Source: Octopus bimaculoides (lineage: Eukaryota). From it: a stretch of 38,155 nucleotides of DNA. The position numbers and the translations under genes were made by a program. Of the stretch, positions 1,849 through 38,051 are shown piece by piece. Positions within the stretch are counted from its first letter, which is position 1; each line of letters starts with the position of its first letter. The stretch spans positions 99,331,398-99,369,552 of the forward strand of contig NC_068983.1 of the NCBI RefSeq assembly GCF_001194135.2. Reading direction: 5' to 3'. The notes under the pieces are model-generated. The model had not been told where the DNA came from. It did not search any database and saw only the letters and a list, made by a program, of their open reading frames with translations.

Positions 1849-4800
1849 GTAAGTATTTTTAACACTTAATTTAACCTTTTAGCATTTAAACTGGCCATAT
1901 CTGACTCAAATATCCTCCCTGTTTTATGTTCAAACCAGCCAGATCAAGCCTCTCACACCTACCCTACAAAGTCATTCTCAAAGTAAACAATCACATCATT
2001 GAATGCTAAAAAGTTAAGGACTGTTGACATGATGGATTTTACTGTGTTGCTGAGGTATATAGTTGGTTAAGTATGTATTAGGTATTATTGGTCTTTATTT
2101 TATCAGTCCTAGAAGAATGAAAGGCTAAGCCAGTGCTCAGTATCACACATTTGATTTGTTTTTGGAGCTAATATTGAGATACAATACAGCAACTCATCTA
2201 ATATACCAATCCTGACCGTTTTCAAAATTATGTGTTACAGCTTCCTTAGATACAAAGATACAAGAGTGAATAGAATCTTAAAGGATCATTACTGATATAA
2301 TAACTTTACTGAGATGAGAAATGTTTTTTTTTGTTTTTTTTTATTGTGTGTGTGTGGGGGGGGGGGACAAAATATGTAATTTGAGTGTCTATAAGAGGCT
2401 GGGTATAAGAGATATTAAAGACTGCTGCATAAATTTGAAATATACTTTATACAAGCCAGTGGTGAATTGTATTCTTGAGAAATGATTAAAAGAAGGGATA
2501 GATAAAACAAGTGAACTGAAACAAAAGTGGTTGTAAATCTTACACATAAGAACTACCTGTAATATATCGAGTATCAGTAAAAATGGTAAAAAAAAGAGAA
2601 AATGTTTTTTCTTTACTCTTTTTTTTACTGGTTTTAGTCTTTAGAATGTGGTTGGGCAGTGCTCCAGCATGGCTGCAGTCAAATGACTGAAACAGATAAA
2701 AAGGATATAAGAATATCATTAAATGTCGACAAAACAAAACTAGTGTTACCCCATCCACATGAAAAGTATCGAGTGAAAGGTAACATCAATCTGTATAAAG
2801 CAAACATGTAACAGGAAAAGTATTAAGTAAAAAGTATCTCCATTACTTTAATCAGAAACACACTTTAACCAAATGTGTCAATTGTCTTTGTGTAATCATT
2901 AATAATTGTTTCATACTTAATCACTGTTAATCACTTAAATACTAATTTAAGCAAACTTATAGTATATTGTCCAAACTATTATAATGAGCCTAAAACCACC
3001 TGCATATCTGCTTACAGCTTTGTATATTCTTGTTTACCTGGTCCTTGTATGGTCCCTGACATCCAAAAGAAATATAAAATCTATTTGTACTTTACAAAGA
3101 AACATAACTAAAGAGTAGATTCTTCTTTGCATAAATTTTTACACTGATCAAACTATTCCACTAAATTTTAATTTATTTTTTATTTTTAAAATGCTTTTTT
3201 ATAGTTACTACTGAATAACAAATGAATATCAATTCTGTTTATGAATATATTTCTGCTTTGCTATGAAACAACTTTTAGTTTATCATCATTAATCCTTTTG
3301 TTCCAATATTTTTGTTGAGATACTCTGTGTTTCTTTCAATTAATTTTAAATATAACAAAGAATTCAATAAAATAACTTAGTTATCATTAAGCTAGTGTTA
3401 GAAACATAAATTGTGACTAAGGTTTGGTGGAAGATTTTAATTCAGAACTTTTGGAAACAAGACATTTGTGCTACAGAGCCAGAAGTGGTTTCAGGTGGGT
3501 TGGTATCAAAAGGGTTAAAGAGATCGTGTTTGTTTGACAAACACAAAATCTTATTGAAAATGTGATTGAAACTGTAATCAAGGATATTCCAGCTGTAGTC
3601 ATCCCAACAACTTTTTATCAGTGTATCTAGGGCTATATTAATCAATCTGTCTTTCAATTTTTATGACAGAGTTTTATTTGAGAGAGATTTAGCTGCTATT
3701 TCTAGCATGCTAAGGGAATATGTAGCACAGTCATGGGTTAACAATAGCATACAAGACTTTCTGAATGGCATGCCAATGAAAAATTACCTTGAATTTTCTT
3801 AGTAGTTCAGTCTACCTAATGATGAGTCATGCCTGATGTAGAGGTTACCCATGCAAGACGTAGAGGTTTCTTTGTTCACTAGAGAGTTTATGACCTTAAA
3901 ATTATTTCATAGCAAGGCTAAATGTATTTTCTTTTATAATATTAACTAATGCAGATGTTCTGTTGTGCATTGTGTAATAATGAAAATTTTCTCATTGCAG
4001 CTCATGATGGCACAAGCCAATTACCACAAAAATGCCCTTGAAACAATCGATAGAGTGATACCTAAAATGAAACAAATGATTGGTATGTTGTTGTTGTTAT
4101 CATTATTAAAGGCAGTGAGCTGGCAGAATTATTAGCATGCTGGGCAAAATGCTTAGCATCATTTTGTCCGTCCTTACATTCTGAGTTCAAATTCTGCCAA
4201 GGTCAACTTTGCCTTTCCTCCTTTTCAAAATTGATGAAATAAGCAACAGTTATGCACTGGGGTCAATGTAATTAACTAGTCCCCTCCTGCTAAATTTCAG
4301 GCCTTGTGCCTTTAGTAGAAAGGATTTTTATTATTATTATGATGATGATGATGATTATGTGATGAAAACTCACAGCTTATTTTGCTGGGTATGATGGAAA
4401 GTGTCAGCTGTCCACAGCCAGCAGACCAAGGTGACACTTGTTTATTGGTCATGCTTCAAGAACCCTGCAAAGGATTCTTGCAGTTCCAAGCAAAGCTGAT
4501 CTTTGTAGGTGTTCTACTTTCATACTTGCAAATCTTTTTCAGCCATGCTGATAGTTGAGTGCTGATACTTCTAAATGGCACCAATTACTATTGGTATCAT
4601 GTCTACTCTCCTCATTGATCACAACCTTCGTATTTCCCACCTCAAATTATCATAGTTGTTTATTTTTTCTTCTTCTTTCACATTGATCCTGTTGTCACCG
4701 GGGCATGCTATGTTGATTATCATGCATGTTTTTTTCTTTTTTATTCACCACAACAATGTTTGGTTTCTGATGTCTGGTCAAGTGATTGCACTGGATCAGT

Positions 4801-7800: not shown

Positions 7801-10800
7801 TCTGAAAATAAATATGAGGAGTCTTACCTTCATACTAACTTGCTTGCTGAACTCATTGCTAATTGTCATCTTGCTTACAACATCTCTGTATATCATTTGG
7901 TTGTCTCTCAAATGCCATTTATTTACACCTACTTTTCATGGAGACTACCAGATGATGTAGAACCCTGTCTAAGGCCTTCTCAAGGTCAATGAATGCTAGG
8001 TATAGTGGCTTGCTCTTAGCTCAGAATGTCTACTGTAGTTGTTTCACCAGTAGAGGGTGTTGGTGGTATCCTCTCTTGGAATAAACTTCGACTGCATCTC
8101 ATCTAAGTTAATTTTGTCTGTCTTTACATTCTCAATTCATATTCCGTTCAGGTTGACTTCATCTTTCATCCTTTTGGGGATCGATAAAATATGTACCAGC
8201 TGAACATTGGAGTCAATATAATCAACTACCCCTGCCTTCTGCCAAATTTCAGGCATTGTGCCTAGAAAGGATTATTATTTTATTCAAGTGGTGAGCTGGC
8301 AGAATTGGCAGCATGTTGGACAAAATGCTTAGCAGCATTTATTCCGACTAAATTCTGACTTCAAATTCCACTGAGGTCAAGTTTACTTCTTTCTCATCCT
8401 TTCAGAGTTGGTTAAATAAATACCAGTTAAGTATTGGGGTCAATGTAATTAATTTACTCCCTCTCCCTAAAATTACAGATCTTGTCCCAAAATAAGAGAG
8501 AATTATTACTAGTAATAATAATTCAAATGTCATTTAAATATACACTTTTCATTTGATGAAATTTTATTCCACACATTGCCTCACTGTATGCTATGTAATA
8601 TTCAAAAGAGAGAAATGATAAACTAATTTGTGAAATATTTCAGATTTATGAAATACTTGTTTACACCTTGTTCAACTACTTTTGTTTTCAAATGTTGTTT
8701 TCTCCACAGACACTAATCCTGTGAAACCTGTCTATGGTACCTGTCTGTCGGACCATTTAAGAGTTACTGGACGGAATATTGCCTTAGTCATTGAAGGCTG
8801 TGTCTGTACTTTAGTAGATACAGGCTTAGAGGAGGAGGTAGGATTTTTATTTATTTTTTTCTTTTCTTCCAAACTAAAACTAAGTAAAACTGGTGTCATC
8901 ATCATTTTCATCATCATTTTAATGTCCACTTTTCCTTGCTTGCATGACTTGGAGGGAATTTGTTGAGGTGGATTTTCTACAGTTGGATGCCCTTCCTGTC
9001 ACCTACCATCACCTGTTTTCAAGCAAGGTGATATTTCCCCATGGCCAGATGTATTTTTACAGATTGGAAATGAAAGACACTGCTTGCACGATGGTGACAT
9101 TTGTTTACAACTATCATGCAATGTCAAGGGAAGGGAACAGTAACACGCGCGCGCGCACAAATACAAACATAAATATATGAGCAGAATTTAGGCTAGTTGA
9201 AATATGTTTGTCACATATTTCAATTTCTAAAAGGCAAGTACACTGCAGTTACCATGGAGAAAAAATTTCTCGTGTGGTAAAAAGGTGTGAAAACACCAGT
9301 TAGTTCAGTGTTGCCCTCTATTAGGAATCTCAGACATCACTGTTTCAAGTTTTTTGATTACTACTGCAAATCAGCCTAAATTCTGCTCATCCTTAAGCAC
9401 TGCTTCATGCTAACTTTTCATTATTTACCTTGATTGGGCAATCTACTAGTGCAAATCAGTCAATGTATTGACCAGATTATATATAAAGCTATGACTTTAT
9501 TAAGTTCATTCAGAGTTGCCTCTCTTAGGTACATCGCATTGATGAGTCAAAAAACTTGAAACATCGATGTCTGAGATTCCTAGTAGAGGGTGACACTGAA
9601 TGAACTGGTGTTTTCACACCTTTTTACCATAAGAGAGATTTTTTTTCTCCACAGTAACTGCAGTGTATTTACTTTATAGCAGTTGAAATATACGACAAAC
9701 ATATTTCAACTAGCCTTAATTCTGTCCATAATACTGCTTCGTGCTAATGCTTTGTTGTAAACATATATATATATATATTTATACACACACACCCATGACA
9801 GACTTCTTTCAGTTTCTACCTACCAAATCCACTCACAAAGTTTTGGTCAGCCTCTGACTATATTGGAGGTCACTTGCTCAAGGTACCATGCAGTAGCACT
9901 GAACCCAAAACCATATGGTTGGGAAACAAACTTCTTACCACACTGCCATGCCTGTACATATTGTGTTTTAAGTAGTACAGTTCCTCTAGAGGACAGCACC
10001 AAACTGTTCTGTCAGTGAAGCAAACATCATATTGTTGCCTATTTTATTCTCCTTGCTTGTGAAATTCTATTTTTACACATGTGAGGTATGCTAGTTATGT
10101 TTACAAATTTCCATTTTATTTGTCACTATTTCTTGGGATTTACATGCTGTAAATTTATTGGGGGAGGTCGGTCCGGTATGGAGGCATCTACTATTACAAC
10201 ATGTTACTGCATCCAACATTTGTCAGTGACTCCCTACTCCTGGTGGATGGACCCTTTGCACCACTCAGGTGACAACCTTCTGATTCATGGGTTTGTTTTG
10301 GTAGTAGCTGCTGGTGAGGGTTTTATGAGATCAAAGTGTAAATCCTACCTCAACCTCTTTTAGTTGTCTTTTACAACACACAGAGGAAATGGGCTTATTC
10401 TTTGGCATGCTGGTCCCCACACAGTAAGCTGTGTTTATCAGGGGGAGATAATTAAACATTTTCAGGTTTGAATTTCGCTTAAGGTGGTTACTGTAACAAG
10501 TTTCCCTTTTCACATATTTTCTTCCATGAGATCAGATACTGGCTGTTTCTGTTAAATAAAAGCTGAAATACTTTAACTCTATAAAGTGGTTGATGTTAGG
10601 AAAGGCATCAAGCCATGTAAACTGTGCTAAAATGGAAGGTGCAAGGGAATCATAGTTCTCTGATCAATTTCAGAGATTGGTAACATTGAAGAACTGATGA
10701 TCTGCTCAGCTCATACCAGCTTGGAAAATGGATGAATAAGTTACAAAGATGGTGATGGTGGTGGTGAGGATGGTGATGATGATGGTGATTTAAAAGAATG

Positions 10801-13380
10801 AATGTAGAATTAGAAAAATTCTTTGCGATTTTTATTTTTAAATTTTTTATTTGACATTAACATGTTAAACATTTATGTTTGTTTCAGGGTTTATTTAGAA
10901 TAGCAGGAATGGCTTCAAAAGTAAAAAAATTGAAGGTAAACTCCTAAAACATTACTTCATATATTCAGATAATAATTACATATTTTAAAAAAATTACTTG
11001 ATAATATATTTAAACTAATAATCTTTTTTTAATTAGTTTTGTAGTACAGCAAAAAGCATAAATCCAAAGCTTGTGAAAAATTAGCTACAGGATGTGTATG
11101 CAACATGCTTCTATGATGTTAATGTTCTGTCAAACTTGCTTGTAGAAAATATAGATAACTTTAGGATTTTTAATGTCTACCATTTCTGCCAATGGTAAAA
11201 TTAGCAGTTTTACAAAAATAACATTGTGTAACATGATTTTCGTCTTTGGGTAGCAACTCTTATTTCCTATTTGCTTATGCCTAGAAAGAATGAAAAATGG
11301 CTAATACTCCCTTCAAACTTAGCTTTCCTCAAACTTGTCTCCACTTGGACAGCTCGAAGTAAACTGAACTGTGTTGCCAGAATGTTCTAGAAATTCTTGA
11401 AACTTTTAGAAACTTCTTGAAAGTTCTTGAAACGTCTAGAAAGTTCTAGAAACTTCTGCTTCAGCAACTCAGTGTTGAATCTATCTGAAATGTTATGGAA
11501 AATAGGTTAGTTACAAAACATTGATGTCCAGGTCACAAAAGCAAAGTTTGAAGGGAATAGTAGTCATTTCCTTTGACTTCTAGATAGAAGCAAATAGGAA
11601 ATAACACTTACTGATCAAGTACAAAAAATAAATAAATAAATAATAAATGAATAAAAATTTTGTTATACAGTGTAATATATAAATTCAGAACTATTAAACG
11701 TCTTTAATTCTGGCATCCTTATTATACAAAGACAATGTTTTGGTGGAATTTTCCAAACTTCTGAAAAGTCAGTTTATTAGAAACAAGTATCTGACAACAT
11801 TTTTATTCCTTTATATGTTCCTATTCTAATGAACAGTAAAATGTAGGACAGTTTCTAACTTGGTGCATGCAATGTTGTGTGATTAAGAAGTTTACTTTCC
11901 GATCACATGGTTTCAGATTCAGTTGCATTGGGTAAAAGTCTTAGTATATTCCCTGGCCAGTATATTCCCAGGCCAACCAAAGCCTTGTGAGTGGATTTGG
12001 TACATGGAAATTGAAAGAAGCCCATCACACATATTTATGTGTGTGTGTGTGTCCCTGTCTTGACATTGCCCAATAGATGTAAATGAGTGTCACTGTCACA
12101 CAAGCAAAGTTATTCATTTTCAAAATTCTGTAAAAAACATGTCTGGCCAGGGGGAATATATTACCTTACTTGGAAATAGTTGAGGGTTGGCAATGAGAAG
12201 GGCATTTGGCTGTAGAGAATCTGCCACATTAAACTTTGTCCAACCCATGCAAGCATGGAAAAGCTGATGTTAAAACAATAATGACAAACATTCCAAATCT
12301 ATTGGGCGTTTTGTTGTTTAATGCCAGATTAGTTCTAATTAAACAAAGCAATTATTATTGGATTCCTACCATCTTATTTTCAGACAATGTATCTAGGACT
12401 ACATTATCAAATGTGGCTTTTTGGTTTTTGTAAAGATGATAAAGTGTGGTTTTAAGGTAATTAGGTTGCTGTTTGTAGCAGATCAAGACCATATAGAGGT
12501 GCTTTACAATTTTTTATACGAGAAGAGTTAGTTGGACCCTAAATTCTTTACTGAATAAATAATCTGGTTCATATTCCTTCAAATATATCATTAATAACTT
12601 TCAGTACTCAAGTATCAACATTTAGCTTTCTTATTTCTCATTAAGGTTATTGAAAAAGGACCTCTGTGGAATGTTTTTTTCTCTTATGCAAGATAAGGCT
12701 GAAATATTTAAGTAAACAAATTTTTGTATTCCACTGAAAAGTTGTACATTTTTGGTTGTTGGTAAAAATGAAAGAAACATTCTATCAATTTTTTGTAGTT
12801 ATTCAAATTGTGTTGGATATTTTGATGAAAAAGTATTATTTTCTTTCTTTTTAGGCATCGTTTGATGCTGGTATAGTAGATATGGAGGAATACGAGCATG
12901 ATTTACATACTGTAGCTGGTAAGTTTCATTATTCTGTTCAGTAAACTTTTTAAGTGTTACAGTCTTTTTGCTGTTTAACCTCAAATATTAATTTTTATTT
13001 TATTATTTTCTTTTTGCTATTTTTTAATTACTTAGGGGCCATGAAACAGTATTTAAGGGAACTTCCTGAACCTCTTTTGACGTTCGACTTGTATGCAGAA
13101 TTTGTGCAATCAGTTCATTTGTAAGTTTTACATTTGCATCTTTTCATATACTATTGATGTATATATATGGAAGTAAAATAATAAATGAAAAGGAAAATGA
13201 GGAAATCTTCTAACAATGCAGTGACCTCTTTCCCTTTTCATTTCTTATTCTACTTCTGTATTACAATGCTTCAAGTGAACTACAATCATCATCATCATCA
13301 ATTAACGTCCGCTTTCCATGCTAGCATGGGTTGGAGTCAAATCGTCCAACCCATGCTAGCATGGAAAGCGGACGTTAAAC

Positions 13381-13446
<66 letters not shown>

Positions 13447-16400
13447 NNNNNNNNNNNNNNNNNNNNNNNNNNNNNNNNNNNNNNNNNNNNNNNNNNNNNN
13501 NNNNNNNNNNNNNNNNNNNNNNNNNNNNNNNNNNNNNNNNNNNNNNNNNNNNNNNNNNNNNNNNNNNNNNNNNNNNNNNNNNNNNNNNNNNNNNNNNNNN
13601 NNNNNNNNNNNNNNNNNNNNNNNNNNNNNNNNNNNNNNNNNNNNNNNNNNNNNNNNNNNNNNNNNNNNNNNNNNNNNNNNNNNNNNNNNNCTGAAACGTT
13701 GTGTTAACAACAAACAAGATGAGGACAAATATCCGTCAAATGTAAATAATGTCCATAATTCCTCATCTCTTAAATATAGAACTATATATATATATATATA
13801 TTATGTAAATTTATATACGACAGGCTTCTTTCAGTTTCCGCCTATCAAATCCACTCACAAGTCTTTGGTCAGCCTGAGGCTATAGTAGAAGGCACTTGCT
13901 CAAGATGCCATAGAGTGGGACTGAACCCGGAACCATGTGGTTGGGAAGCAAGCTTCTTATCTCACAACCACACCTGCACCTATGTATATATATATATATG
14001 TATAATGACATAAAGAGAACCTGTACAGACACATATATAAGCAGAGTAAACACTATGTGAGAAAGACCCTTTTAATCCTGTGTTGTTGAGGACATGAGAA
14101 CCTCTTTAGTGTTGGTGCTACAATAAAATGTACTCTGTGTATTCTGTAAAATGGCTGACAAACATAGGGAAAAAGCATAGGATTGAAAGGACCCTTTAGT
14201 CTTTTCTTGTGTCTGTGTGATGATAAATTGCATTCAGTACACTCTGTAAAGTAGTTGGTGTGAGGAAGAGCATCCAGCTGCAGTCACTATGCCAAAAGAG
14301 TTATGTACAGTACTCCAACTTGTCTTTCAAAAAAGTGGCTCCCAGAAGTAACTTAGAACATGAAGACCTGTACAAACCATGCCAGCATGGAGAAAGAATG
14401 TAAAATAATGATGATGATGCAGTTTTCGTGTATGTGTGTGTATTGGGAGGTTGTGCTGTCATTTTGTAGTGGAAGGTAGCAATGGCAGAAATAGTTCCTT
14501 GGAATACTTGGGGGAAAATTATTTCAGTCGAAACTTTAAGGTTCATAAATAAGAGAAGAAAAGGTTGAATTACATGCAGTTATGTGGTGTTGCAAATTCA
14601 CCAAGTCCAAGCTATTATGAGGAAAAAAAACTTAAAGTAGACATTTCCCTTATATTTGATACACCATCATCATCATCTTCATCATGTTATGTCCATTTTC
14701 CATGCTGGTATGGGTTGCATGGGTCATAATGGTCCAAGTCAGACCTTGTTTAGAACTACAGCCATCCTAGATAAGCCAGAGGGCCATACCTTACTCTGAT
14801 ATTCTATTTTTGGCATGGTTTCTATGACTTAATGCCCTTTGTCACACTAATCACTTCACAGAATGTATTAGATGAATTTTATCATAACACCAGCACTAGT
14901 GAGATCATCTTGTCTTTGGGAAAACTTACGAGTCCTCTCCATTTCAATAATAAAATATGAAGTCATTGTTATTTGTGAAGGAGAGTAACAAGAACATGAT
15001 AGTCCATTGTTATGTTTTATATAATCTCTTTATTATCTTATTTCAGACCACAAGACCAACGTCTGGCTGCTTTAACTGCCACTGTAAATAAATTGCCTAA
15101 AGAAAATTATGACAATTTTAGGTGTGTAATATTTGCTATATTTTCTAGATTGATATTCAAATTAAATTTATTCATATAAGTATTTGAATTACATTGCTAC
15201 AATTGTGTGCTGTGCCATAACTCTGTTTGCTCCAGCTTTAGTTTCTTATAAAAACCAATGGGCATTCTTATACATTTACTGTGATAATTTTCAGCCCTGC
15301 TTCAGCAAGTACTGTGATGATGAGATCATCATAATAAGGCTAAAATATATTTGGAGTTGACTCCTATTCATGTTGAAATAACTGAAAATATTATTACATA
15401 TTTACTAACATTTCTTTCTCACCACATAATAATTTGTTAACTTTTTTTAGTGGTAAGAAGAGTATTGTCTCTGAAAGCAATTGCTTCAGCAACAAAAAAA
15501 AATTATACTACTTATACTTTCATTACAAAATTGATAGAGAAAAGCAAAAAAAAAAATTTTTCTTAACATTAGATTCAAGTAAGGCAGCAAGTTGGCAGAA
15601 TTGTTCACGTGCTGGACAAAATGCTTATCTTGCTGTCCATCTTTGCTTGCTGAGTTCAAATTCTGATGAAGTTGACTTTGCCTTTCATCCTTCCAAGATT
15701 GCTACAATAAGTACCAGTTGAACACTAGGGTTGATGTAATTGACTTACTCCCTGCCTCAAAATTACTGTCTTTACATTCTGAGTTAAAATTCTGCTGAGG
15801 TCAACTTTGCCTTTCATCCTTCCAGGGTTAATAAAATAAGTATCAGTTGAACACTGGGGTTGATGTAATCGACTTACTCCCTGCCTTGAAATTGCTGGCC
15901 TTGTGCCAAAATTTGAAATCAATAGTAGATTTAAGTTGTCTATCATACAACACAATGACAAAATTGTAATTCTATGCTACATCACCTAATTACGTAGTCA
16001 TTGGATTATGTCTTTTATCTTGCATTTGGATAAGCAGAAACACAATTTTATGTTGAAAAACCAAAATTAAATTATAAGTTAAAATTTGCTGAACAACTTT
16101 ATCACACGACCATCATATCTTTTGAAAGAGCTTTTAGGCTGAGGTGCTATGATCAGGCTCCTGCGAAAGAAATGTTAACCCCAAAGATAGTGTTTTGTTA
16201 TTGATACTCTACATCAGTGATTTGCAACTAGTGTCCACATGACCTCTGCAAAATAGTAAATTGAGGATCCACAGTAGTATTTTAAGAGTCCATGTAAAGT
16301 TTTGATTTAAATGTGTCTATTGCAAGAAGCAGCTAGGTTTCTTTTTATAATGTTTTACATAGTTCAGCATACACAAGTTAATGTGTGAATAACAAAATAG

Positions 16401-19400
16401 GAATTTTGAAAGAAGTATTTATAAAACTAGTTGTAAACATTGAATAACTATAGGGGTTCCCTAGAATAAAATAGTAATCAAAGGGGTCCTTAAGTACAAA
16501 ATGATTGAGAACCCCTGTTCTACATGTTTCTCCAGTTCATCTCATAAATGGTTAGTCTAATGAAAAGCATCTCACTCTTGATAACTGAAGCACAAATACA
16601 AAAAATTTTTTTTTTAAATAGCTAGTTCAAACAAGTACAGAAAAGTGTGTGGAAATGTTAAGGAAAATATTAAATGTTTGTGGATGTGTATTAATTGAAC
16701 CAAATCATATTTTTTTTATTTCTTATACTTGCAGGTATTTAGTGAAATTTCTTGCAAAATTAGCGAAGTGTTCCAATACTAATAAAATGACAGCTAGTAA
16801 TATTGCTATCGTGATAGGTCCTAATCTGCTTTGGTCATCAGATGAAAGTCTGTAAGTATGAAATTTTTAATACATTGAACAGTATATCTTTATATATATA
16901 TATATATATGTATGTGTACTATTATTGTTATTGAGAAAGTAAAGGTGGTGAGTTGGCAGAATCATCAGCATGCCAGACAAATTGCTTAGCAGTATTTCTT
17001 GCAGCTTTATGCTCTGAGTTCAAATTCTACCTTGGTCAGCTTTGCCTTTCATCCTTTCAAGGACAATAAAATAAGTACCTGTTGAGTACTGTGATTGATA
17101 TAATTGACTAGCCCCACTTCCTACCCCTAACTTCAACCCTAACCCTAACCCTATCATCATCATCATCATCATCATCATCATCGTTTAACGTCCGCTTTCC
17201 ATGCTAGCATGGGTTGGACGATTTGACTGAGGACTGGTGAAACCAGATGGCTACACCAGGCTCCAATCTGATTTGGCAGAGTTTCTATGGCTGATTGATA
17301 TATTATTAAACGAGTTGTTTTAATCGTGTGACACTGTCACCAAGTATATTCTTAATTCTTCCAAAAATCTAATAGATAACCATTGATAACCATTGATTCA
17401 GTTAATTAGATATGATTATTTGGAAAATTGTACTTAGATGAAAGAAATTATTTACTTTGTATTATTTTACTACAATCATGTTCTGTTGTTGTTCCATTTC
17501 AAATCACAAAAAAAAAAAAAAGAAAATAGAAATGGAAAAATTTTGAATGACTTCATTCATATGTAATATGTTGACAGTCTTGTCACATCTCACTCTGTCT
17601 TTGGATTGTGACAAGCCAAGTGAGAAATATAAACAATGAATTAAAAATAAATAAATAAATACTCATAAATGTAATAGTTTCTAATAGGTACAAATCTAGA
17701 AATTTTGTGAGAGGTGGATGGGTAAGTTGTCTAAACCTCAGTGCAGGGATACCTCAATTTACACTGGTAATTAGTTCTAAGACACAACTTAACTCTCAAA
17801 AAATGACATAATACAAGAAAACATTAAAAAAAAATTATTTGCTCATATCTGTTTTAATAAATGGTTTCTACATATATTTTCACATGTATTTTATTTGATT
17901 TTCCGCTTTGGTTTCGGTATAAACACCTAAAAGCTGTTTTTTAACCCTTTAGCATTCAGATTATTACTTTAAATGTAGTACTTATTTATTCATATTGTTT
18001 TGTATTAGCCATGCATTATCTCATAGATTTGAGACTTCAATCAGGGGCAGACCCAAAGGTCTTTTCTCCTGGAATTGTATTCCCTTCTGACCTTGTGCCC
18101 TCCCTTTGAAAAATTCCTGGGACCGTGCCTGTCAGTGCTGTGATAGCTTTACTCTTAGAATGACATTGTAGGGTGGATTGGAAAGATTGGATCTGGTCAG
18201 AATACAGAATATTTTGGCCAGATTTGGCCAGTCTAAAAGCTAAAGGGTTAATTTTTATGCTGGTAAATTAAATATGTTCACTGAGTATGACATAAAGTTG
18301 AATAAATTGACTGAAGTTGAGGTTTAATTTTCCCATTCATTTCTTTAAAAAAATTATGTAAAGTCAAAAAGGACACAACTTGAAATTATGTAAGTTGAAG
18401 TATGCCTATAGGTAAAGACAGTTGCGGCTATCTGGTCACTGCTTGTGCCACCCTGAATTGAAAGTATCCAAGGAACCCACTTCATGGTGATGTAAGAAGA
18501 GGAAAGTCGTCACACTTAAATTGACTACTTGTTTGCAGACACTGGCCTGGAATGTATCCAGGACCTTGTGGCAGATGGATTTTGTTGCTGCAGTTCAGGT
18601 TGGAACCCAGCCATTAAAAAAAATAAAGTGCCTATACTTGACTATTTTTTTATCTCAAAATTAACTGCAGTGGGATTTGAAGTCAGAATGTAAAGAGTTG
18701 TAACTAAATATGACAAAATGTTTGTCTGATACCCTAACAGTTCTGCTAACCCATATCCCTAATGATAATAATGTAGTAGTGACAGAAGGAGACATGACAA
18801 TAGCAATCAAGTGACTTTAGAGTGTTTGATGAGCAGAGGTTTGTTTATCAGGCTATTTTTTAAATATTTTTTATGTGACCTTATATGTGTGTTCATGTAC
18901 TTTGTTGCTGCAGATTCAGGTTGGAATCCAGCCATTAAAAAAAAAAAATCGCCTACTAATTCAGGTGTGTGAATAGTACTTTAGCACAGACAATCTTGTG
19001 CAGAACCAACAATTGTTTGGAGCTGATGAAATATCTGACTCTGAAAAAGAGCACTAATGTATGTGATGTATCCTTGGCTTTGTGCTATATGTATGGTCAT
19101 TATGGAAGGTCATCTGAAAGAATAGTGAAGTGGTATCTTTTGCCTTCTATCTGTTTCACTCCCTGAACTGTGATCATGCTGAGGCACCACCTTGAAGGGT
19201 TGAGTTGAACAAATTGACTTCAATACTTGTTTTTTTTAAAAAAAAGTCTTTTTGCCAAACTGCCGAGTTATAGGGACATGAACAAACAAACACTGGATGT
19301 CAAGCAGTGGTGGGAGACAAGCACACACATACACACACATATATAACAAGCTTCTTTCAATTTTAATCTACCAAATCCACTCACAAGGCTTTGGTCAGCC

Positions 19401-22400: not shown

Positions 22401-25400
22401 ATTGATGTGACAATGTGCTGACAAATATTGCTTCTAATTGTTTGACTATTATACTTTATCTCCCATCCTCAGCATGTTTTGACAGTGGCAATTTCTCTTC
22501 CAAAAGGAATGTTTTGATTAAAATTGTCTCAGTGGTATATCTTACCAGTACGTTAAATGATAAAAATAAATGTTTTCATATTATTTAGGTCTTTTGCATA
22601 ATATTCCTTGTTTCATCATCACCTTTGGATATTTCATTCTTGAATTGATATTGAATATTTAAGAAAACTATTTGGTTTGAGTGATTTAGTAAACTTCTGT
22701 CTGAAAACATGATAAACATGGTAGTTATTTCAATTATTTCTAATGTCGCTATGTCTTCTTTCTCCTGCATCAACTGACTAAATCTAACCTTTATATACTG
22801 TTAGTATGTTATATGAAGAGATTGTCATACATTGGAACATCTATTATATTTTATTAAATAGGCATAAAATTCTGTTCAGTATCTTGCTTGTTATGGCTTG
22901 TTAATCTTGTGTGTTATAGAAAGACGGTGAACTGGCAGAATCATTAGCATGCCAGGCAAAATGCTTAGCAGCATTTTATCCATCCTTAAGTTCTGAGTTC
23001 AAATTTTACAGAGGTTGACTTTGCCTTTCATCCTTTTGTGGTCAATAAAATAAGTACCAGTTGTGCACTGAGGTTGATGCAATCGATTTTCCCCCTCCAC
23101 TGAAATTGCTGGCCTTGTGCCAAAATTTGAACCCAATATTGCATGTTATTATAGTAGAGAAGGATTATTAATTTAAGAATAAAATTACAACAGAAAATAA
23201 ACTTGTTAAAATCTAAATTTCCTTAAAGATTAATATATATTTTTTTCATCTGAATTTCTTTTGTTGCTTTGCAGATGTGTAACTAACAAAACTATTTTTT
23301 TCCAGTCAAATAAACTGAATAGTCTTCTTTTCTTATGTTTTTCCTCTGTATCAATAATATATTTCATCTGTTTTTATTGTCTTTACATATGTTAATTTTC
23401 TACTGAAAAGCACATCAGGTTTAATGATTGTTGACTAATTGAGATGACAGTAATGATATATTTTTGAACTTGCTTTTTTCCTGGGTTTTATTTAAAAGTA
23501 ATTTTCATGATCACAATTTACATATAAATCTTGGTCTTCAGTTTTATAAAAAAAATTATTTCCTCTGTTATTCAAAGTTTGCTGTTCAAATACTGATATT
23601 ATGCCTCATCATTTATCAATATTGATTTTTAACATTGCCACATATTTGAAAAGGAGAGTATAGTTTATTGAATTAATCACAATATACATCTTACTTATTT
23701 TCACCCATAGGGGGATAATAATTAAAACTAGTCCTTGTTGGATTGTATTTTTAACTTGGGAATAAATGAAATACTGTAAAATATTTTGTCTACTGCTTCA
23801 CAACTTCTACCAGTCAATTGGCTAAAAGACATAGTTTTCTTGTATAGTGATTCCATTCTAAATTCTTATCACTTCATATTTTACTAATTAGATTGGAAAA
23901 GCTGGAAAATAATTATTGATTTATTTGTTTATAATTTTATTTTTGACATTTTACATCACATTTCCCATACTTGATTGTTTCTACTCATTTAGAAATTTTC
24001 ATGATTTGTTAGAATACGTCTTTTACAACAGGCTTCTCATCTTAACCAATTCTTCAAATCTGATGACACAATGATGCACATTTCGTATAAGCTTAAATGG
24101 AGTTTTTAAAGTAGGAATATAATGCAATTCTTATGATATCTTGAACTCGTTGCATTTACATTCTATTCTGATATTTCCAAACTTATTGCTCACATCATCC
24201 TGTCACACTAAACTGAACCTATGTTAGCATTGCAATGTGTACTTCTGATTCTATGGTAAGATGTGTACCATGAACTGTGTGATAGTTTAATTTTCATCAC
24301 ATGATAGCTGGTGTTCTAATAATTGCAGTTATTACTGATAAACAGTTTGGAGGATATACTTGTTGCAATTCATTGTACACCACTACTAGTCGTGTATTCA
24401 TTATGTAGAAGCCATTGCTAATGGAGGTGTTAAGATAAACTGGATAGTAGAACAACTATGATAGAATCAAAATTATGAAGTTTGGTTTTGTTTTCTATCA
24501 ATTTTTGTCTTTTTAAACATTAACCCTTTAGTGTGCAGATTACTCTGTCAAATGTAATGCCCATTTATTCACATTATTTTGAATTTATCCTGCATTATAT
24601 TGTAGCCTTGAAGTTTCGATGATGTGATTGTTTATATTTAAAGGACATTTTAGGGTAGGTATGAGAGGCCAGATTTGGCCAGTTTGGATATAAAGCAAGT
24701 AGAATATTTTGGCTGGATATGGTCAGTTTAAATGCTAAATAGTTAATCAATTTTTACATTTGTCAGGTAAATTTATTGCTATATAGTCTTTGATAATTTG
24801 GTGTGATGTGCCATAATGAAATATTTTAATTATTTTCCAGTATTCAAATACCTAAAAATAGTATTTGACAAAAATGCCTCTGGTTTTGAGGCTTCACAGT
24901 TTTGCATTATGATACCACTTTTTGTGCTTGATAAGCTGAGTGCAAGAGTTCAATTCAATTAACTATGCATGCTACCAGACAAAATATGTTCTTGTATTTG
25001 GTCAAAAAGATATCTCCATCCTTGAAATTTTTCTGCTTTACTGTTGTATTTTTCTTGAAAGCTCACAGCCAGTAACCTAAGTCCTCAACTGTAACCCTTT
25101 TGCTAACTTAGTGCCCCTGTTAGTAATGGATTGATTTCTTCATTCTTCAGTGTCCTGGTTTATGACTATATTTTGTTTTTGCATCATCTTAAAGTTTCCT
25201 GCTGAAGGTCCTTGATTGCCACTTCTATACTCAAGTAATTCATTTTCATTATTCATGATGTCAATCTATGTTCCTCTATGCATCATATCTGATGTGAAAC
25301 TCTCACAAAATACTAATTTCTTCATCCTCTGTAACATACTCCAAGTTATAGCTACATCATATTCCCTCCACTACTTAATCTTCCAACCCAATTCAAGAAG

Positions 25401-28400
25401 GACCATTTATACTCATCTTAAACTAACTTTTTATACTTTGATATGATAAGGGTAATCATAACCATCGTCATTGTTGTTTCAATGTCCACTTTTCTATGCT
25501 TGCATGGGTTGGACAGAATTTATTGAGAAGGATCTGTATGGCCAGATGCCCTTCCTATTGCCTACCCTCACCTGTTTCTGAATAAGGTAATATTTCTCCA
25601 TGACCAGTTGTGCTTTCACAGAAGATTAGAAACGAAGGACACCACTTGCATTATGGTGACACTCATTTACAAACTGACACTTACATATATATATGACAGG
25701 CTTACAAGACTTTAGTTGAACTGGGGCTCTAGTAGAAGACACATGCCCTAGGTACCATTCATTGGGACTGAACCTGAAACCATGTAGTTTGCAAACACAC
25801 TTCTTGCCACATAACCACACCTGCACCTATGAGAGATATTTTCACTAACTTACCACATAGCCTTGAGTGAGGTTACAGTTGTTTTGCTTGTACAAAACTT
25901 GATGTAACACTCTGTAAATATGAAAATTTCAGTGTTTGGCTTGAGATTGCTTTCCTCTAACCATCACCATGTTGTAATCTTGTTTACTTTTTTACACATT
26001 TGAACTATTCTTTATGTACTAACTCAACTTCTTCACCTCTTCTTTGATCTAGTCTTCACAACTTATTACATTTTTTTCCCTCTCAGATGCCCTTGTAAGA
26101 AGATGCAAGCATTGCAGCTTTTGCAGGATATATACAGTGTATATTCAATGACTTCCTTCTTATTTTGTTCTATTTTTCTTGCTTAACACTACCTTATAGC
26201 CTTTGAGTGTCTTTAGCAGAGTCTACTCTTATAGCAAGCACTCCAGCAATGCCGCTTTTCTTCCCATACTTTCACCAGTCCTGGAGACTTTTTGCAAGTT
26301 CATTAATCCACTTCTGTATTTCAACAATGAAATGGTCAAAATATATTGATTGCTATTATTACTTCTATTATGTTTAGATTCTAAAATAAATCTATTTTCT
26401 GAAATATTTCTTTCATAAACTCAGGAAGTTAACGTTCATCTCTTTTTCCATCCATCTGTCTAACCAAAGTACAAATTATTGTAAGCGTTGTCCTTGATAA
26501 ATCAGATGCAGTTTCATTCTCAGATATATTTTGTCTTTATCCTTATCATCATCATTGTTATTACCATTGCCTCTTTCTCCACCTTTACTTTCTGTCTTGT
26601 GTTGTTTAATATCTTTGTTTCCCCACCAGTTGTTAATATCTTTTAATTTGTGTAATTTGCTATACCATAATACTGTCATTTGCATCTTATTTGCATACTA
26701 TAAGCAATTTGGTCAACAGCATCATGCATCATGAACTTTTCTACATACCAGAACTACAGCATTTATTTCACTCCTTGACATTATCCTTGCACTCCACATA
26801 TATTTTCTTTCTCTTACTCAGCATACACAGCTCTTGAGAGTCCTTCCAGTATCGCAAAGTAGTTTGCATTTCACTTTTGGGACAGACATTTACATCATCA
26901 TCATCATCATCATCATCCATCATTTTAAATCTGGGTTTTGTCCCTGTTGACGGGCATGGCCGGATCTACCTCAATGCCGTAGCAACTGCCCTCACACCAT
27001 CTCGCCAGGTTTTGGGCATCCTCCCTTCTCAAGCCAACCCTCCCAATCTCCTCCTCCACCTGTCCCCTCCACATTTTCTTCGGTCTACTTTGCTTTCGTT
27101 GTCCATTTACCTCAAACTCCAGCACCCTCTTAAGAATATGCTCCTCATCCCTCCTCAACATATGCCCATACCACTGCACTCCATTCGCCCTTGTCAGCTG
27201 ACATACTGATTCTTCCAACCCCAGCATCCCCATCAAGTCCTCAGTCCTCTTATCAAACAGTATCACGCTCACATTTCTATCACCATTGCTCTCTCAGTCC
27301 TTCTCAAAATTGCCATCTTTCTCTCCTTCAAACACCATATCTTGCTCCCATACAGCATTGCAGCTCTCACACAAATCCTATAGACCTTTCCTTTCGTCTT
27401 CACTGAGAACCTTTTCCCATATAACAATGCTTCACATTCCATGAACTTCACCCAACCAAGTCTCACTCTTGCTGTCAGCTGCTTCATATCCACCCTATCC
27501 AATAGAATGGTTTTATTTCTATATTTATCTTTTTATTTCTTCCACAATTTTTCATGTACTCTGGAGCACCAACTTCAGTTCTTTTTCCAAGTCTTGATCC
27601 CTAATTACTGGATATTCATTTACTTGTGAATGTTTTGCTGTGTGTTTAGATGGCTTTAAAAAAAAATTTTTTTTTTACTTTAGCCATTATATTCTCATTG
27701 TGAGGAAAGAAGTTATGTTTTCAGGTACAGTGGTTTGTAAGTGTTGAGTTGTTTTTTTTTTTTGTTTTTGTACTGGATCATTGAAAAGTTTCTATTGGAC
27801 ATTTCTAGTCTATTCTAGTGTGCAGCTTTAGCTTGTTGAATTTGTCAAACTATGTGTATTTAATTATTTCTCTTTGAATTTATTTTTGCTTATGATACAA
27901 TGTTGTTATTGTTATTTTAAGAGGGTTGGAAATGTTTGCTAGTTTTGATAAACTTTGGTTGTTTTCTGCTGTTAATGATGGTCTTTTGGCTTTTTACATT
28001 TGTACTACCCGGAGAAAATCAATAATATTTGTAGTCACTAAGGTGAATATTGTTTTGAATATTGGTATCACAATATTTTGTTATGACTACTCCTGATTAA
28101 CTGTGAAGGTTATCATAATCTACATGATATAGTTCTCACCCATTATCATCATCGCTATTGCTATACTTTTCAACAAACTTTTTTTCCATGATATTTATCT
28201 TCTCTCTTCTTTGTAAATCTAAGTAATTCATAATTTTTTTTAAGGAAATCTTTGTTATCATAGACTTCTCCACCCAAGTCAGTATACTTTTTCATTCTTC
28301 TCCTTTGACTTATGATGCAGTAAACTTACTTCATTCATGACCTGGTCAGAATCTTTTATGAAACAAGTCATATGTAATATCAAGACATTATATCATAAAT

Positions 28401-29830: not shown

Positions 29831-30838
29831 GTCAGAATTTTAAATTCCTTCTTAGAATTTATCATAGTAGTCACTTTTTTTTTTATTAAGTGCTACTTTA
29901 TCAATTGTGTCTTGATAATATTGGTACACTACAGTGGAAATTAGCTAACTCTGTGGAACTGTCAACTAGGAGCTTTTTATTTTATTAATTTTTCCATTTC
30001 TTGTGTAACGGGAATTAAAATTGGCTTGCAGGAAAGAATAATTTTTTGATACAAATATGAAAAATGAAAAAAGGAAAACTTAAATTTTCTGCCTGCCACC
30101 CCCAGCTTGCTTCCAAGTGGAACAAATAGCCATTGCTTTTGCTGTATTATTGTAACAATTTTAGTGTCAATTATCTGCATTACTTCTGCACATATTTTCT
30201 TCTGCATGTTTCCTTCTCCTGTCTTTCACTGAAAATTATCTCTCCTTTATCTAATAGCATGTTTTCATTTTAACCCTATATTTTCTATACAATTTGTATT
30301 TGCTAAATTGTATTTATTTGATGTCTCAGTTGCTCTTAATTTTGCATCTTCCTGACAGAAAAATCTAAAAAAAAATTTTCTTTCAATTTACAATTGAGTT
30401 TTTACTGATTTTCTTTAAATCAAAACTATTTTTTACCATATGTTGCTAAAATTAATTCCCTTCAGATTCCACGGAAACATTCTGGGATGGGGCATGTCAT
30501 CACACTCTACCTTCATTCTACAGATTTCGTTATTTACTCAATAATATCTTTACCTCACTCACAGATAGTAAGAACAATCTAGTATTATCAAACCATCTGC
30601 ATCTATCATACTAACGTTATTGATCTTGTACATGTTCTTAGAAATTATTGTAGTAAATCTATTGATTTTCCCCTCATTTTCATAAACATACTCTAAAAAC
30701 TCCTTGCTCTATCTAAATTGTACTTACAATTCACATTCATAATTGCTATTGTTGTCATTATTATTATTTTGTTATTACAACCATTTTTTAAAAATTAATT
30801 TTCATCATTATCTTCACTATTATTTCAGTGAGTCTTAT

Positions 30839-33467: not shown

Positions 33468-33477
33468 CCAATATTAT

Positions 33478-34370
33478 TAGGGCTGTAGATTGGCAGAATT
33501 GTTGAGAGCATTGGACAAAATGCCTTGCAATAATTCTTCTGGCTCTTTACATTCTGAATTCAAATCCTGCAGAAGTCAACTTTACCTTTCATCCCTCCAG
33601 GGATTAAAATAAAATAGTGTACTAGTTAAATTCTGGGGTGGACTTAATTGACTAACTTCTCCCTCCAAAATTTCAGGCGTTGTGTCTATATTAGAAACAA
33701 TTGTTGTGGGATGATGGTCAGTTGAATCATAGGGCATTAGACAAAATGTCTTGCAGTATTTCCTGTAGCCCTGTATGTTCTGAGATGAAATTTGTCTTCC
33801 AACACTCTTAGCTTGATAAAATTAAGTACCTGTCAAATACTAGGGTTGATAGTGTTAGTCTGTTCCCTGCAAAATTACTAGCCTTGTACCTAAATTAGAA
33901 ATTATTATTCTTATGTTGTTATGTTCATTGCTAATGTGCTTTGTTTTGACGTTATTATACCTTTACTTAAAATGGCAGGCTGGCAGAATCATTAGCATGC
34001 CAGGTGAAATGTTTAGTGGTATTTTGTCTGCTGCTATGTTCTGAGTTCAAATTCCGTTGAGGTCAACTTTGCTTTTCATCCTTTTGGGATCGATGTAATC
34101 GACTTAATCTCTTCCCCCAAACTTGAGGCCTTGTGCTTTCAGTAGAAAGAATTATTCTACCTTTACTAGGCAATGAGCTGGCAGAACCATTAGCATACCG
34201 GGCAAAATGCTTCGCAGTATTTTGTCTGTCCTTATGTGCTAAGTTTAAATTCTGCTGAGGTTAACTTTGCCTTTCATCCTTTTGGGGTTGATAAAATAAG
34301 TACCAATTGAGCAGTAGGGTTGATAAAATAAGTACCAGTTGAGCAGTAGGGTTGATGTAATCAACTTAAC
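33478..34370 (+). mobile_element. Cluster of four co-oriented SINE family A copies (about 33478-33702, 33712-33908, 33972-34155, 34168-34370)
   Basis: four repeats of head plus B-box; most keep the CTTTCATCC core; last copy has a 32-bp tandem duplication at 34285-34348. Confidence 0.78.
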
Positions 34371-36035: not shown

Positions 36036-36174
36036 TACTAAAACAACGTCATCATGTAGCTAATGTAAATTCCACCACAGTTACCTTCCAGCTATCTTTC
36101 TCTGAAACAGTCAGCTTTCTTTCTGATATTTTGGCTATTGTGACCAGTTTGTTTTTAATATTATTAAGTAATTC

Positions 36175-36497
36175 AAATTCCACCGAGGTCAACTTTGCCT
36201 TTCATCCTTTCAGGGTCGATAAATTAAGTACCAGTTGCGTACTGGGGTCAATCTAATCGACTAGTCCCCTCCTCAAAAATTTCGGTCCTTGTGTCTAGGG
36301 TAGAAAAGAAATGTTAGCATGCTTAGTGGTATTTTGTCTGTCTTTGTGTTCAGAGTTCAAATTCCGATGAGGTTGACTTTGCCTTTCATCCTTTCGGGGT
36401 CGATAAATTAAGTACCAGTTGCATACTGGGGTCGATCTAATCAACTGGCCCCCTCCCAAAAAATTTCAGGCCTTGTGCCTGGAGTTGAAAAGAATAT
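36175..36497 (+). mobile_element. Two tandem, relatively young SINE family A copies (5'-truncated)
   Basis: both keep CpGs (GGGTCGATAAATTAAGTACCAGTTGC). Confidence 0.85.
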
Positions 36498-36939
36498 TAT
36501 TAAGTAATGTATAAGAATTATATAACTATTTATCTCATGGACTCAGTTTCTTTACCAATTTCTGATAAATACTCAACTTTTTCAACTTTGAGATTTGCAG
36601 TACTATCAATAGTTGATCATTCTTGGTTTCTTCACTAATTTTCAATAAATACATGACTTTTTCAACATTGAGACTAGAGGTTCTATCAATAGTCAATCAT
36701 CCAAACTGACTTTAGCAGTTGGCTGAATGAGAGATATAATGTATATACTTTTACCAGGGACTTTAGTGAAGTAAAAGAAATTACTAAAACTAAATTTGAA
36801 CTTGGTTCAGAGTTTGTTCACCAGAGATTTGCCATCCTGTCTATAATTACAGTGATTTAACAATGTGATTAACGACCTTTGTTTTTTCAAATTTGCAATA
36901 ATCCAACTCACATCAAATATCTCTTCTTTTGAAAGAGGT

Positions 36940-37480: not shown

Positions 37481-37595
37481 TCTGGTGTTGCTTTTTTTTT
37501 TTTTTTTTTGCTCAATGTTCTGTAATTAGCATGTAATATCTTCCTGCGAGCATTAAGCTCAATCTCTTTCTCTTTCTTTCTTCCTCTCTCTCTCT

Positions 37596-37598
<3 letters not shown>

Positions 37599-37688
<90 letters not shown>
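37599..37688. repeat. (TC)n microsatellite, about 45 units
   Basis: seen directly. Confidence 0.95.
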
Positions 37689-38010: not shown

Positions 38011-38050
<40 letters not shown>

Positions 38051-38051
38051 T

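Follow-up and report, generated by a model that had tools for sequence, protein, structure and literature searches.

Within a RhoGAP intron of Octopus bimaculoides, an imperfect inverted repeat encloses a short array of alternating nGAAn and nTTCn pentamers, and the locus raises the question of whether it belongs to a transposon family that disperses heat-shock elements (HSEs) or whether its match to the HSE consensus follows from its own repeat structure. The former had been proposed in a first-pass annotation of the 38,155-nt stretch of DNA analyzed here (hereafter, the window). If such a family were bound by HSF1, it would represent the first instance of HSE arrays being carried by a TIR transposon and, apart from the Caenorhabditis Helitrons, the first animal example of densely clustered HSEs in a TE. 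If its consensus held the array, the dispersal of HSF sites by transposons would have arisen independently in a lophotrochozoan, on a cut-and-paste element; the model, if true, would also provide a handle on the rewiring of heat-shock networks in animals facing ocean warming. The analyses below lead us, with roughly even confidence, to a description of the locus as a foldback-type inverted repeat of ~340-390 bp, old and non-coding, with a palindromic minisatellite at its apex that conforms to the HSE consensus.

Host intron and inverted-repeat anatomy

The exon at 10888-10935, when joined with the neighboring exons, was assigned to the RhoGAP domain (Pfam: PF00620, E = 1.2e-22). The placement of the element inside a RhoGAP intron, 325 nt downstream of the arginine-finger exon, was reproduced from the coordinates (11260 - 10935 = 325). 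The host features are the following:

10888..10935, plus strand: RhoGAP arginine-finger exon of 48 nt, encoding GLFRIAGMASKVKKLK, upstream border of the host intron
10936..12854, plus strand: host intron of 1919 nt (~1.9 kb), with GT at 10936 and AG at 12853-12854
12855..12918, plus strand: downstream RhoGAP exon of 64 nt, encoding ASFDAGIVDMEEYEHDLHTVAG, 3' border of the host intron

Other dispersed-repeat fragments are also carried by this intron, at ~11957-12288. Using the exon 1+2 peptide, which matched two more distant relatives, we found in one of them (locus L123) an intron of ~570 bp at the same position with neither an HSE nor similarity to the element, in a comparison that covered these two features and at a distance too great for dating the insertion. 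Thus, the element cannot be regarded as an ancient feature conserved in this gene. A 265-aa exon query recovered two relatives with 70-73% amino acid and 77% nucleotide identity, the introns of which could not be aligned; the relative locus L001 extends only 10 kb upstream, short of the orthologous intron.

The element itself is organized symmetrically around the array, with the following features, none of which has an assigned strand:

11252..11326: left outer arm (11260-11326 in the first-pass annotation, as TIR), aligned locally with 11538-11612 in reverse complement
11327..11367: left spacer of 41 nt between outer arm and inner inverted repeat, pairing poorly with the longer right spacer and partially paired in the fold
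11368..11382: inner inverted repeat on the left, ACTGTGTTGC-CAGAA, which continues into the array's first pentamer and was aligned with 11454-11473 in reverse complement
11380..11457: minisatellite of 78 bp at the apex, ~7.5 units of consensus TTCTAGAAAC, with a single deletion of 1 nt following the first unit
11454..11473: inner inverted repeat on the right, TTCTG-CTTCA-GCAACTCAGT, from alignment to the left inner repeat
11474..11537: right spacer of 64 nt, predicted to fold into a small separate side hairpin
11538..11612: right outer arm, from local alignment to the left arm

Aligned without gaps, the segments 11260-11326 and 11604-11538 were identical at 53 of 67 positions, the same value previously given for 67-bp TIRs in a foldback anatomy, with which our alignment, BLAST, shuffling and folding results all agree. 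Allowing small indels, the arms extend over 11252-11326 and 11612-11538 with ~80% identity, and weaker inverted similarity continues out to 11237/11627 (90 nt, 74%). An (AAAT)n microsatellite starts at 11627. The arm-to-arm BLAST alignment within the window reached E = 1.8e-7, and the left half aligned to the reverse-complemented right half with a score of 48, against 15.7 +/- 2.7 in shuffled sequences (maximum 27.5). The inner inverted pair adjoins the array on both sides, and the whole unit was predicted to fold, as DNA, into one hairpin (-66.8 kcal/mol, z = -7.9). With a size of 339-391 bp, a GC content of 0.35 and a longest ORF of 39 aa, the element exhibits the terminal inverted repeats, small size (below ~800 bp) and lack of coding capacity of MITEs; it also exhibits the arms with internal tandem repeats and the fold-back of the whole unit that characterize foldback elements, at a scale far below that of the described families.

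When folded as RNA, the element was likewise predicted to form a single long hairpin (-116 kcal/mol, z = -7.6), and within the intron it is on the sense strand, with very small exons on either side of that intron (48 and 64 nt). These features would be compatible with a role in the pre-mRNA, where the inverted repeat could form a long imperfect dsRNA acting as an ADAR or small-RNA substrate, or influencing the splicing of the small exons. However, any inverted repeat within an intron would pair in this way, the Rfam search of the element returned no family (best E = 0.95), and the comparison with the intron of the distant relative gave no indication that the structure is conserved; we regard this role as exceedingly improbable.

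The 10-bp array and its match to the HSE consensus

Tandem Repeats Finder (TRF) reported a period of 10 at 11385-11457 (7.4 copies, 79% matches) and a period of 20 at 11380-11457 (81% matches), with 84% for the period-30 reading, and a repeat spacing of 10 nt was also observed in the array. Read as pentamers, the array comprises 16 alternating nGAAn/nTTCn units, 14 of which have perfect cores. The first register has GAA/TTC cores at 11380, 11385 and 11390, and the second, which differs from it by 1 nt, has 13 pentamers in 5-nt steps from 11394 to 11454, where 11 are perfect and two are not (11404, TTT; 11434, GTC). This recount is identical to the count made before (13 pentamers in one register, 11 of them perfect, plus three perfect ones offset by 1 nt). 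The perfect pentamers are arranged in runs of 3, 2, 5 and 4, within a definition of the HSE as three or more contiguous inverted nGAAn pentamers. Additionally, six perfect three-unit HSEs of the NGAANNTTCNNGAAN type were found in the 38-kb window against 0.5-0.6 expected, all six inside the array. The pentamer runs and the three-unit HSEs both bear out the designation of an extended HSE by sequence definition.

A search for symmetry centers inside the array resulted in two centers tied at 26/40, partly by way of the 1-nt register shift. STAT/GAS (TTCN3GAA) and BCL6-like sites were set aside on account of the array spacing, which is N2 on both sides, the spacing of HSF sites.

The 16 pentamers are one 10-bp unit repeated ~7.5 times and not 16 independent events. 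Because the unit contains the dyad TTCnnGAA, its head-to-tail repetition yields alternating nGAAn pentamers without a break, and the sequence definition of an extended HSE is thereby satisfied. A unit that is a palindromic 10-mer would have TTC or GAA as its half-site by chance with a probability of 0.037 (~4%), and the corresponding value for any random 10-mer unit is 0.0034. The locus illustrates a trap, in which any tandem 10-bp unit with this dyad automatically reads as a 'perfect' extended HSE. Since the match is automatic and palindromic units are the expectation at the apex of a foldback repeat, the perfection of the motif is by itself weak evidence of regulatory function. Binding of the array by purified HSF trimers is to be expected and, judging from the sequence, HSF binding in vitro is plausible; we expect no strong heat-shock function at the locus. 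The HSE match was probably acquired as a by-product of the palindromic repeat structure, and not as a selected HSF enhancer.

The decay of the element provides a further view of this point. The arms differ at 21% of sites, or ~12% per arm, a divergence that resembles the 75-85% identity among the dispersed repeats of the window and indicates that the structure is old. The array units differ from their own consensus at 7 of 60 sites (11.7%), a decay equal to that of the arms, which suggests that the array would already have been part of the element when the palindrome formed. Among the six full units, mismatches fall on 2 of 36 core sites vs 5 of 24 spacer sites (Fisher p = 0.10), and the 14 intact cores of 16 compare with ~11-11.7 expected under neutral decay (binomial p = 0.075-0.15). 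This trend toward better-kept cores is non-significant; the TTC pentamers show no variation in the favored A that precedes GAA (T following TTC). The overall pattern fits neutral decay as far as the sequence can tell, and some constraint on the cores could have operated as well, given that only six full units are available.

Ends, copies and origin of the element

Two short segments at the borders of the element comprise a candidate target-site duplication (TSD), again with no assigned strand:

11254..11262: candidate left 9-bp TSD copy, CAACTCTTA, ambiguous, holding only if the element proper is 11263-11601
11602..11610: candidate right 9-bp TSD copy, TAACACTTA, identical to CAACTCTTA at 7 of 9 positions

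As a single test, this candidate has P = 0.0026, which becomes an estimated ~0.05-0.1 after ~40 combinations of boundary and length. The same bases also pair in inverted orientation at 6 of 9 positions, with 9 of 15 pairing farther out. The 9-bp direct repeat (7/9) flanking 11263-11601 speaks for a transposon remnant; against it stand the marginal quality of this TSD, the inverted similarity of the flanks, the unequal lengths of the spacers (41 vs 64 nt) and the lack of a second copy in our searches. No transposase gene was found near the element in the window.

Within the 38-kb window, BLAST at a word size of 7 returned only the element's own arms and the array; the window self-BLAST readily detected other repeat families with 3 to at least 12 copies, among them a SINE-like family with at least 12. 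An exact scan for the two-block TIR pattern in metagenome, GTDB-genome and viral contigs, collections from which the source genus is absent, gave 0 matches. The 17-mer TIR core alone gave at least 120 matches and, among the matches listed, the similarity was confined to ~19-37 nt around the core. At the protein level, all six-frame peptides of the element, combined in a chimeric query, had no match at E <= 10 in ORF collections used as a proxy for eukaryotic contigs and lacking the source genus, and a 52-aa open stretch across the left arm had 0 matches among 1.84 billion representatives, also without the source genus. The absence of this genus from the collections makes the negatives weak, with the nearest relative at ~77% nucleotide identity in a coding exon and its introns unalignable. 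The multi-copy DNA-transposon family with the array in its consensus, as first proposed, has no support from the window, the three contig collections or the translated ORFs, where no second copy was found, bearing in mind this weakness. In the literature searched, we found no report linking TE-borne HSEs, or MITEs with HSEs, to cephalopods.

These results weigh on the model in which the locus is one copy of a MITE or foldback family whose consensus holds the HSE array and which spreads HSF-responsive enhancers or cryptic promoters. Neither the window nor the searched collections (without the source genus) supplied another copy, the age of the element (~12% per arm) means that it is not recently spreading, the conservation of the cores is non-significant, and the intronic site, 325 nt from the nearest exon, has no sign of a transcription start site. 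Moreover, HSF leaves most good HSE motifs unoccupied in vivo, with an occupancy that depends on chromatin. The model draws support from an array that presents the HSE definition many times over, from the equal decay of array and arms, which would place the array in the palindrome from its formation, from the weak trend toward core preservation, and from the precedents of the Caenorhabditis Helitrons (PMC6927752) and of TE-borne HSF motifs elsewhere (PMC7329337). On balance, we find it improbable. That the locus is a copy of an ancient TIR/foldback family, probably of the cephalopod lineage, with a consensus of ~8 HSE units and with copies acting as HSF1-bound heat-responsive enhancers or cryptic promoters, appears very improbable.

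The gradual fading of the inverted similarity to 11237/11627, with no sharp end, in combination with the lack of a convincing TSD and of any other copy in the window, would also suit an origin without transposition. The structure could be a local palindrome, in which template switching or the repair of a hairpin produced an inverted duplication around a palindromic minisatellite, or two head-to-head fragments of an otherwise unrelated dispersed repeat that flank a minisatellite by chance; a pair of the latter kind seems to exist in the window, where the inverted segments 9182-9357 and 9547-9724 resemble head-to-head dispersed-repeat copies, with a third partial copy of their end at 9372-9414. 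Nevertheless, the inner inverted repeat adjoins the array on both sides, so that the symmetry covers the whole unit and not two fragments, the window has no solo copies of the arms, and the element has the size, AT-richness and anatomy usually found in foldback and MITE elements. We consider an origin without transposition unlikely, with a real chance of being correct nonetheless.

By analogy with Galileo, the 10-bp repeats of a transposon might instead be transposase-binding sites, with the HSE match being incidental. Extra transposase (THAP) binding sites in the internal TIR repeats of Galileo have been proposed, as cited in PMC4079207, and each outer arm has the core of the unit once, in mirrored form (11281, CTAGAA; 11578, TTCTAG). 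However, one extra motif per arm is weak in a window with 10 occurrences of CTAGAA and 12 of TTCTAG, the element has no known transposase or autonomous partner, and its repeats are apical rather than subterminal. We attach little probability to this function of the repeats.

Most likely, then, the locus carries the remnant of a decayed non-autonomous TIR DNA transposon of the MITE/foldback class, possibly Mutator-like, which would have reached the RhoGAP intron by transposition and whose symmetry axis passes through a short minisatellite of the palindromic 10-mer. It is a curious single locus and not a demonstrated enhancer-spreading transposon.

Comparison with known repeat systems

Compared by anatomy, the locus is similar to the pearl-type MITEs of molluscs, which are also short and non-autonomous, with flanking modules and a short internal tandem array. 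The internal repeats of pearl-type MITEs are satellite-like monomers of ~100-170 bp, and the units found here are 10-mers. Tandem-repeat-containing MITEs (pearl family, DTC84, CvA) have been described within molluscs in bivalves (PMC5139131 and references therein).

Foldback elements are defined by TIR domains with internal tandem repeats, and have TSDs of 8-10 bp (Tetris, PMC4079207). Drosophila FB, Galileo and Tetris (PMC4079207, PMC3573991) share with the locus the non-coding sequence, the long inverted arms with tandem repeats and the hairpin fold, and the 8-10-bp TSDs of the Mutator-like foldback members can be compared with the 9-bp candidate observed here. Classical foldback elements, however, span kilobases, and each of their arms contains repeats with lengths of tens to hundreds of bp, whereas the locus measures less than 400 bp and has a single 78-bp array of 10-mers on its axis.

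Other systems resemble the locus in the HSF sites that they offer. Human satellite III and subtelomeric repeats (PMC9032817) are also non-coding tandem DNA with many such sites, although these arrays extend over kilobases to megabases, with HSF1 recruitment and lncRNA output shown, and the array described here has 78 bp. TE-borne HSF motifs have been reported in plants, flies and primates (PMC7329337). Among these, ONSEN/Copia78 of Arabidopsis (PMC7329337) is, like the sequence of the locus, an element with HSF-binding elements; it is an LTR retrotransposon, in which HSEs in the LTR promoter drive its own transcription, whereas the locus lacks a promoter or coding context.

The Caenorhabditis Helitrons, invoked by the first-pass annotation as a precedent for TE-borne HSEs, are well documented as such: their tandem overlapping HSEs, described as 'repetitive in nature', recruit HSF-1 and mediate induction by heat (Garrigues et al. 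2019, PMC6927752), and among the UCSC metazoan genomes examined, dense HSE clusters were found only in Caenorhabditis (PMC6927752). Membership of the locus in the Helitrons was rejected, since its palindrome is bounded by 75-90-nt inverted arms, the opposite of an architecture with rolling-circle ends and neither TIRs nor TSD; in its function, the locus may resemble the Helitron arrays. The nematode families comprise hundreds to thousands of copies with HSF-1 ChIP signal and heat induction, in contrast to one copy, known by its sequence, at the locus, and three-unit HSEs reach more than 100 in some Helitron copies vs six here (PMC6927752). The likeness lies in the arrangement, as in both cases a DNA transposon-type repeat carries a tandem HSE cluster next to or inside host genes (PMC6927752).

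Structure of the intronic palindrome and its array

The array, its pentamers and the terminal inverted repeats (TIRs) described in the first-pass annotation were all found where that annotation had placed them, with every described feature present; its 67-nt TIR is exactly 53/67 identical in ungapped comparison. The components of the element are as follows.

11252-11326 and 11538-11612: outer arms (TIRs)
11368-11382: inner inverted repeat, left (ACTGTGTTGC..CAGAA), adjoining the array
11454-11473: inner inverted repeat, right (TTCTG..GCAACTCAGT), adjoining the array
11385-11457: array at period 10, 7.4 copies, 79% matches (Tandem Repeats Finder)
11380-11457: array in an alternative reading at period 20 (81%); a reading at period 30 gives 84% (Tandem Repeats Finder)

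A repeat search likewise spaced the in-register copies 10 nt apart, and the consensus unit is TTCTAGAAAC. The GAA/TTC triplets fall into two registers, the first at 11380, 11385 and 11390, and the second, shifted by 1 nt, proceeding in 5-nt steps from 11394 to 11454 with 11/13 pentamers perfect (the exceptions being TTT at 11404 and GTC at 11434). The 16 pentamers comprise one 10-mer repeated about 7.5 times and are hence non-independent.

Once small indels are allowed, the outer arms pair as 11252-11326 against 11612-11538, and weaker inverted similarity reaches 11237/11627. Because the inner inverted repeat adjoins the array on both sides, the palindrome spans the whole unit, with the array on its symmetry axis. 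This palindrome is not due to chance: the arm-to-arm BLAST E-value is 1.8e-7, and the half-versus-half alignment scores 48 against 15.7 +/- 2.7 in shuffles. When folded, the whole unit forms one long hairpin, at -66.8 kcal/mol as DNA (z = -7.9) and -116 kcal/mol as RNA (z = -7.6). An RNA-level role of this intronic hairpin is very unlikely, and the element has no match in Rfam.

Host intron and surrounding repeats

As the first-pass annotation had it, the element resides in a RhoGAP intron, 325 nt downstream of the arginine-finger exon; it is on the sense strand of the gene, and the intron spans 1919 nt (10936-12854). The exons considered here are the following.

8710-8837: RhoGAP-gene exon, ending ...TGLEEE
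10888-10935: RhoGAP-gene exon with the arginine finger, GLFRIAGMASKVKKLK
12855-12918: RhoGAP-gene exon, ASFDAGIVDMEEYEHDLHTVAG
about 13036-13121: RhoGAP-gene exon, AMKQYLRELPEPLL...
29092-29889 (+): large exon rich in Ser/Thr, about 265 aa, part of the RhoGAP gene

The joined 103-aa exon peptide matches Pfam RhoGAP (PF00620; E = 1.2e-22) as well as solved RhoGAP domains, e.g., RICS 3iug, and the peptide of the two exons that precede the element matched two more distant relatives. At the locus of one of these two (ENA ERZ25069866 ctg4575, 10001-10921), an intron follows KVKKLK at exactly the position of the element-bearing intron. This intron, of about 570 bp, contains neither a heat-shock element (HSE, alternating nGAAn/nTTCn pentamers) nor similarity to the element. 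The element, then, is no ancient feature of the gene; this relative has diverged too far for the insertion to be dated. At the same locus, exons 8710-8837 and 10888-10935, split in the window, are fused, as are 12855-12918 and about 13036-13121, and with the KVKKLK intron kept, intron gain/loss thus differs between lineages.

The window is rich in repeats: its 38 kb hold a SINE-like family with 12 or more copies and several other families of 3-5 copies. Pairwise identity is 75-85% over these families, and is given as 75-86% for the SINE-like one. The element's intron also holds fragments of two of them (about 11957-12288). Other features of the window are listed below.

4102-4338, 8111-8493, 15581-15907, 16940-17115, 22920-23138, 33473-34324 and 36172-36502: copies of the SINE-like family
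15650-15897: tandem pair within this family, 129-bp period
34285-34356: 32-bp internal duplication within this family
9182-9357 versus 9724-9547: second, stronger inverted pair, in the upstream intron, 178 nt, 87% identity
9372-9414: third partial copy of that pair's repeat end (AGCCTAAATTCTGCTCAT...)
13335-13410 versus 17153-17228: 100% identical in reverse complement, which may reflect an assembly artefact or a common microsatellite-containing repeat
13447-13690: assembly gap (244 N), preceded by (GAT)11 and (AT)17 microsatellites
17120-17182: interstitial telomere-like (CCTAAC)x5.7 tract adjoining (ATC)10
26925-27502 (- strand): two neighbouring ORFs, 115 and 77 aa, antisense to the RhoGAP gene, which we take to be putative decayed reverse-transcriptase C-terminal sequence of a LINE/RTE-like retrotransposon
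37563-37688: (TCTC)n simple repeat, 126 bp
38012-38155: (AT)73 simple repeat, running past the window end

The 9182-9724 pair has the look of a dispersed repeat present in head-to-head copies, not of one MITE. It offers a parallel for an origin of the element itself from head-to-head repeat fragments; such an origin, or one as a non-mobile local palindrome, we consider rather unlikely.

Copies, target site and decay

Within the window, the arms match nothing but each other. The strict two-block TIR pattern had 0 matches in the metagenome, GTDB-genome and viral contig collections; the 17-mer TIR core alone had at least 120, and among the matches listed each resembles the element only over ~19-37 nt around the core. 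Protein collections, which hold ORFs called on eukaryotic contigs, served as a proxy for such contigs: a chimeric query built from the element's peptides in all six frames found no match at E <= 10, and the 52-aa open stretch that crosses the left arm had none among 1.84 billion representatives. For the 265-aa exon, the only relatives in the databases are two ORFs, on contigs of ENA and Logan, with a protein identity of 70-73%; evidently, the collections searched, the protein ones included, lack the source genus. Since these closest relatives stand at 77% in DNA with unalignable introns, the negatives on further copies are weak.

The best candidate target-site duplication (TSD) is a 9-bp direct repeat, CAACTCTTA/TAACACTTA, 7/9 identical and flanking 11263-11601, with a single-test P of 0.0026, estimated at ~0.05-0.1 after the boundary/length combinations tried; its bases also match 6/9 in inverted orientation. 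A Mutator-like affinity has been proposed for most foldback elements (PMC4079207), which a 9-bp TSD, if genuine, would fit.

Between the two arms, 20.9% of sites differ, or 0.245 substitutions per site (Jukes-Cantor; ~12% per arm), a level close to that seen among copies of the old dispersed repeats in the window. Across the six full array units, 7/60 positions (11.7%) are off consensus. Because array decay thus equals arm decay, we infer that the array was already there, and more regular, at the formation of the palindrome, and has drifted since. Unit variation is mostly at positions 5 (A/T) and 10 (C/G). Mismatches affect 2/36 core versus 5/24 spacer positions (Fisher p = 0.10, six full units), and 14/16 cores are intact, where neutral decay of 10-12% predicts about 11-11.7 (p = 0.075-0.15); this tiny sample gives no significant evidence of selection on HSF contact bases, with a trend toward spared cores.

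The HSE match and known systems

Perfect NGAANNTTCNNGAAN-type matches number 6 in the window versus 0.5-0.6 expected, all six inside the array, an HSE density far above background. A 10-bp repeat unit drawn at random, at the base composition of the window, equals TTCnnGAAnn in some rotation with a probability of 0.0034; for a unit already palindromic, the probability of a TTC or GAA half-site is 0.037. Foldback structures are expected to have a palindromic repeat unit at their apex, and the HSE match is notable, not extraordinary. Longer nGAAn arrays are bound cooperatively by HSF, the majority of good HSF motifs are unoccupied, and HSEs mostly function near promoters; no promoter evidence was found at the element. 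Arrays of at least three alternating nGAAn units are bound by HSF trimers (Perisic et al. 1989, as cited in PMC6927752), so the perfect runs in the array, of 5, 4 and 3 units, should bind HSF in vitro.

The reading we prefer, with middling confidence, is that the element is a foldback/MITE-type remnant of considerable age and that the palindromic minisatellite at its apex happens to match the consensus of an HSE. Only one copy, an old one, was found; it shows no sign of constraint, and its structure offers a simple explanation of why it looks like an HSE. The interpretation in the first-pass annotation is borne out for anatomy, motif and context, but its claims on family and function are unsupported here: a multi-copy family spreading HSE-array enhancers is quite unlikely, and an ancient TIR/foldback family with the array in its consensus and HSF1-bound, heat-responsive copies is very unlikely. 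That the repeats might be transposase-binding sites, as in Galileo, is improbable; the unit core, present once per arm in mirror image (11281 and 11578), is weakly suggestive of it.

In Caenorhabditis, Helitrons carry tandem overlapping HSEs that bind HSF-1 and give neighbouring genes heat induction (PMC6927752). They are the closest functional precedent; the element's long inverted arms rule out a Helitron identity. Transposon-borne HSF sites are documented in ONSEN, Alu and fly elements (PMC7329337), and repeat-borne ones in satellite III and subtelomeres (PMC9032817). Our literature search turned up neither a TIR element with an HSE array nor a cephalopod example. In structure, the element resembles a miniature version of the foldback elements Tetris and Galileo, and likewise of the tandem-repeat-containing MITEs of molluscs (pearl family).
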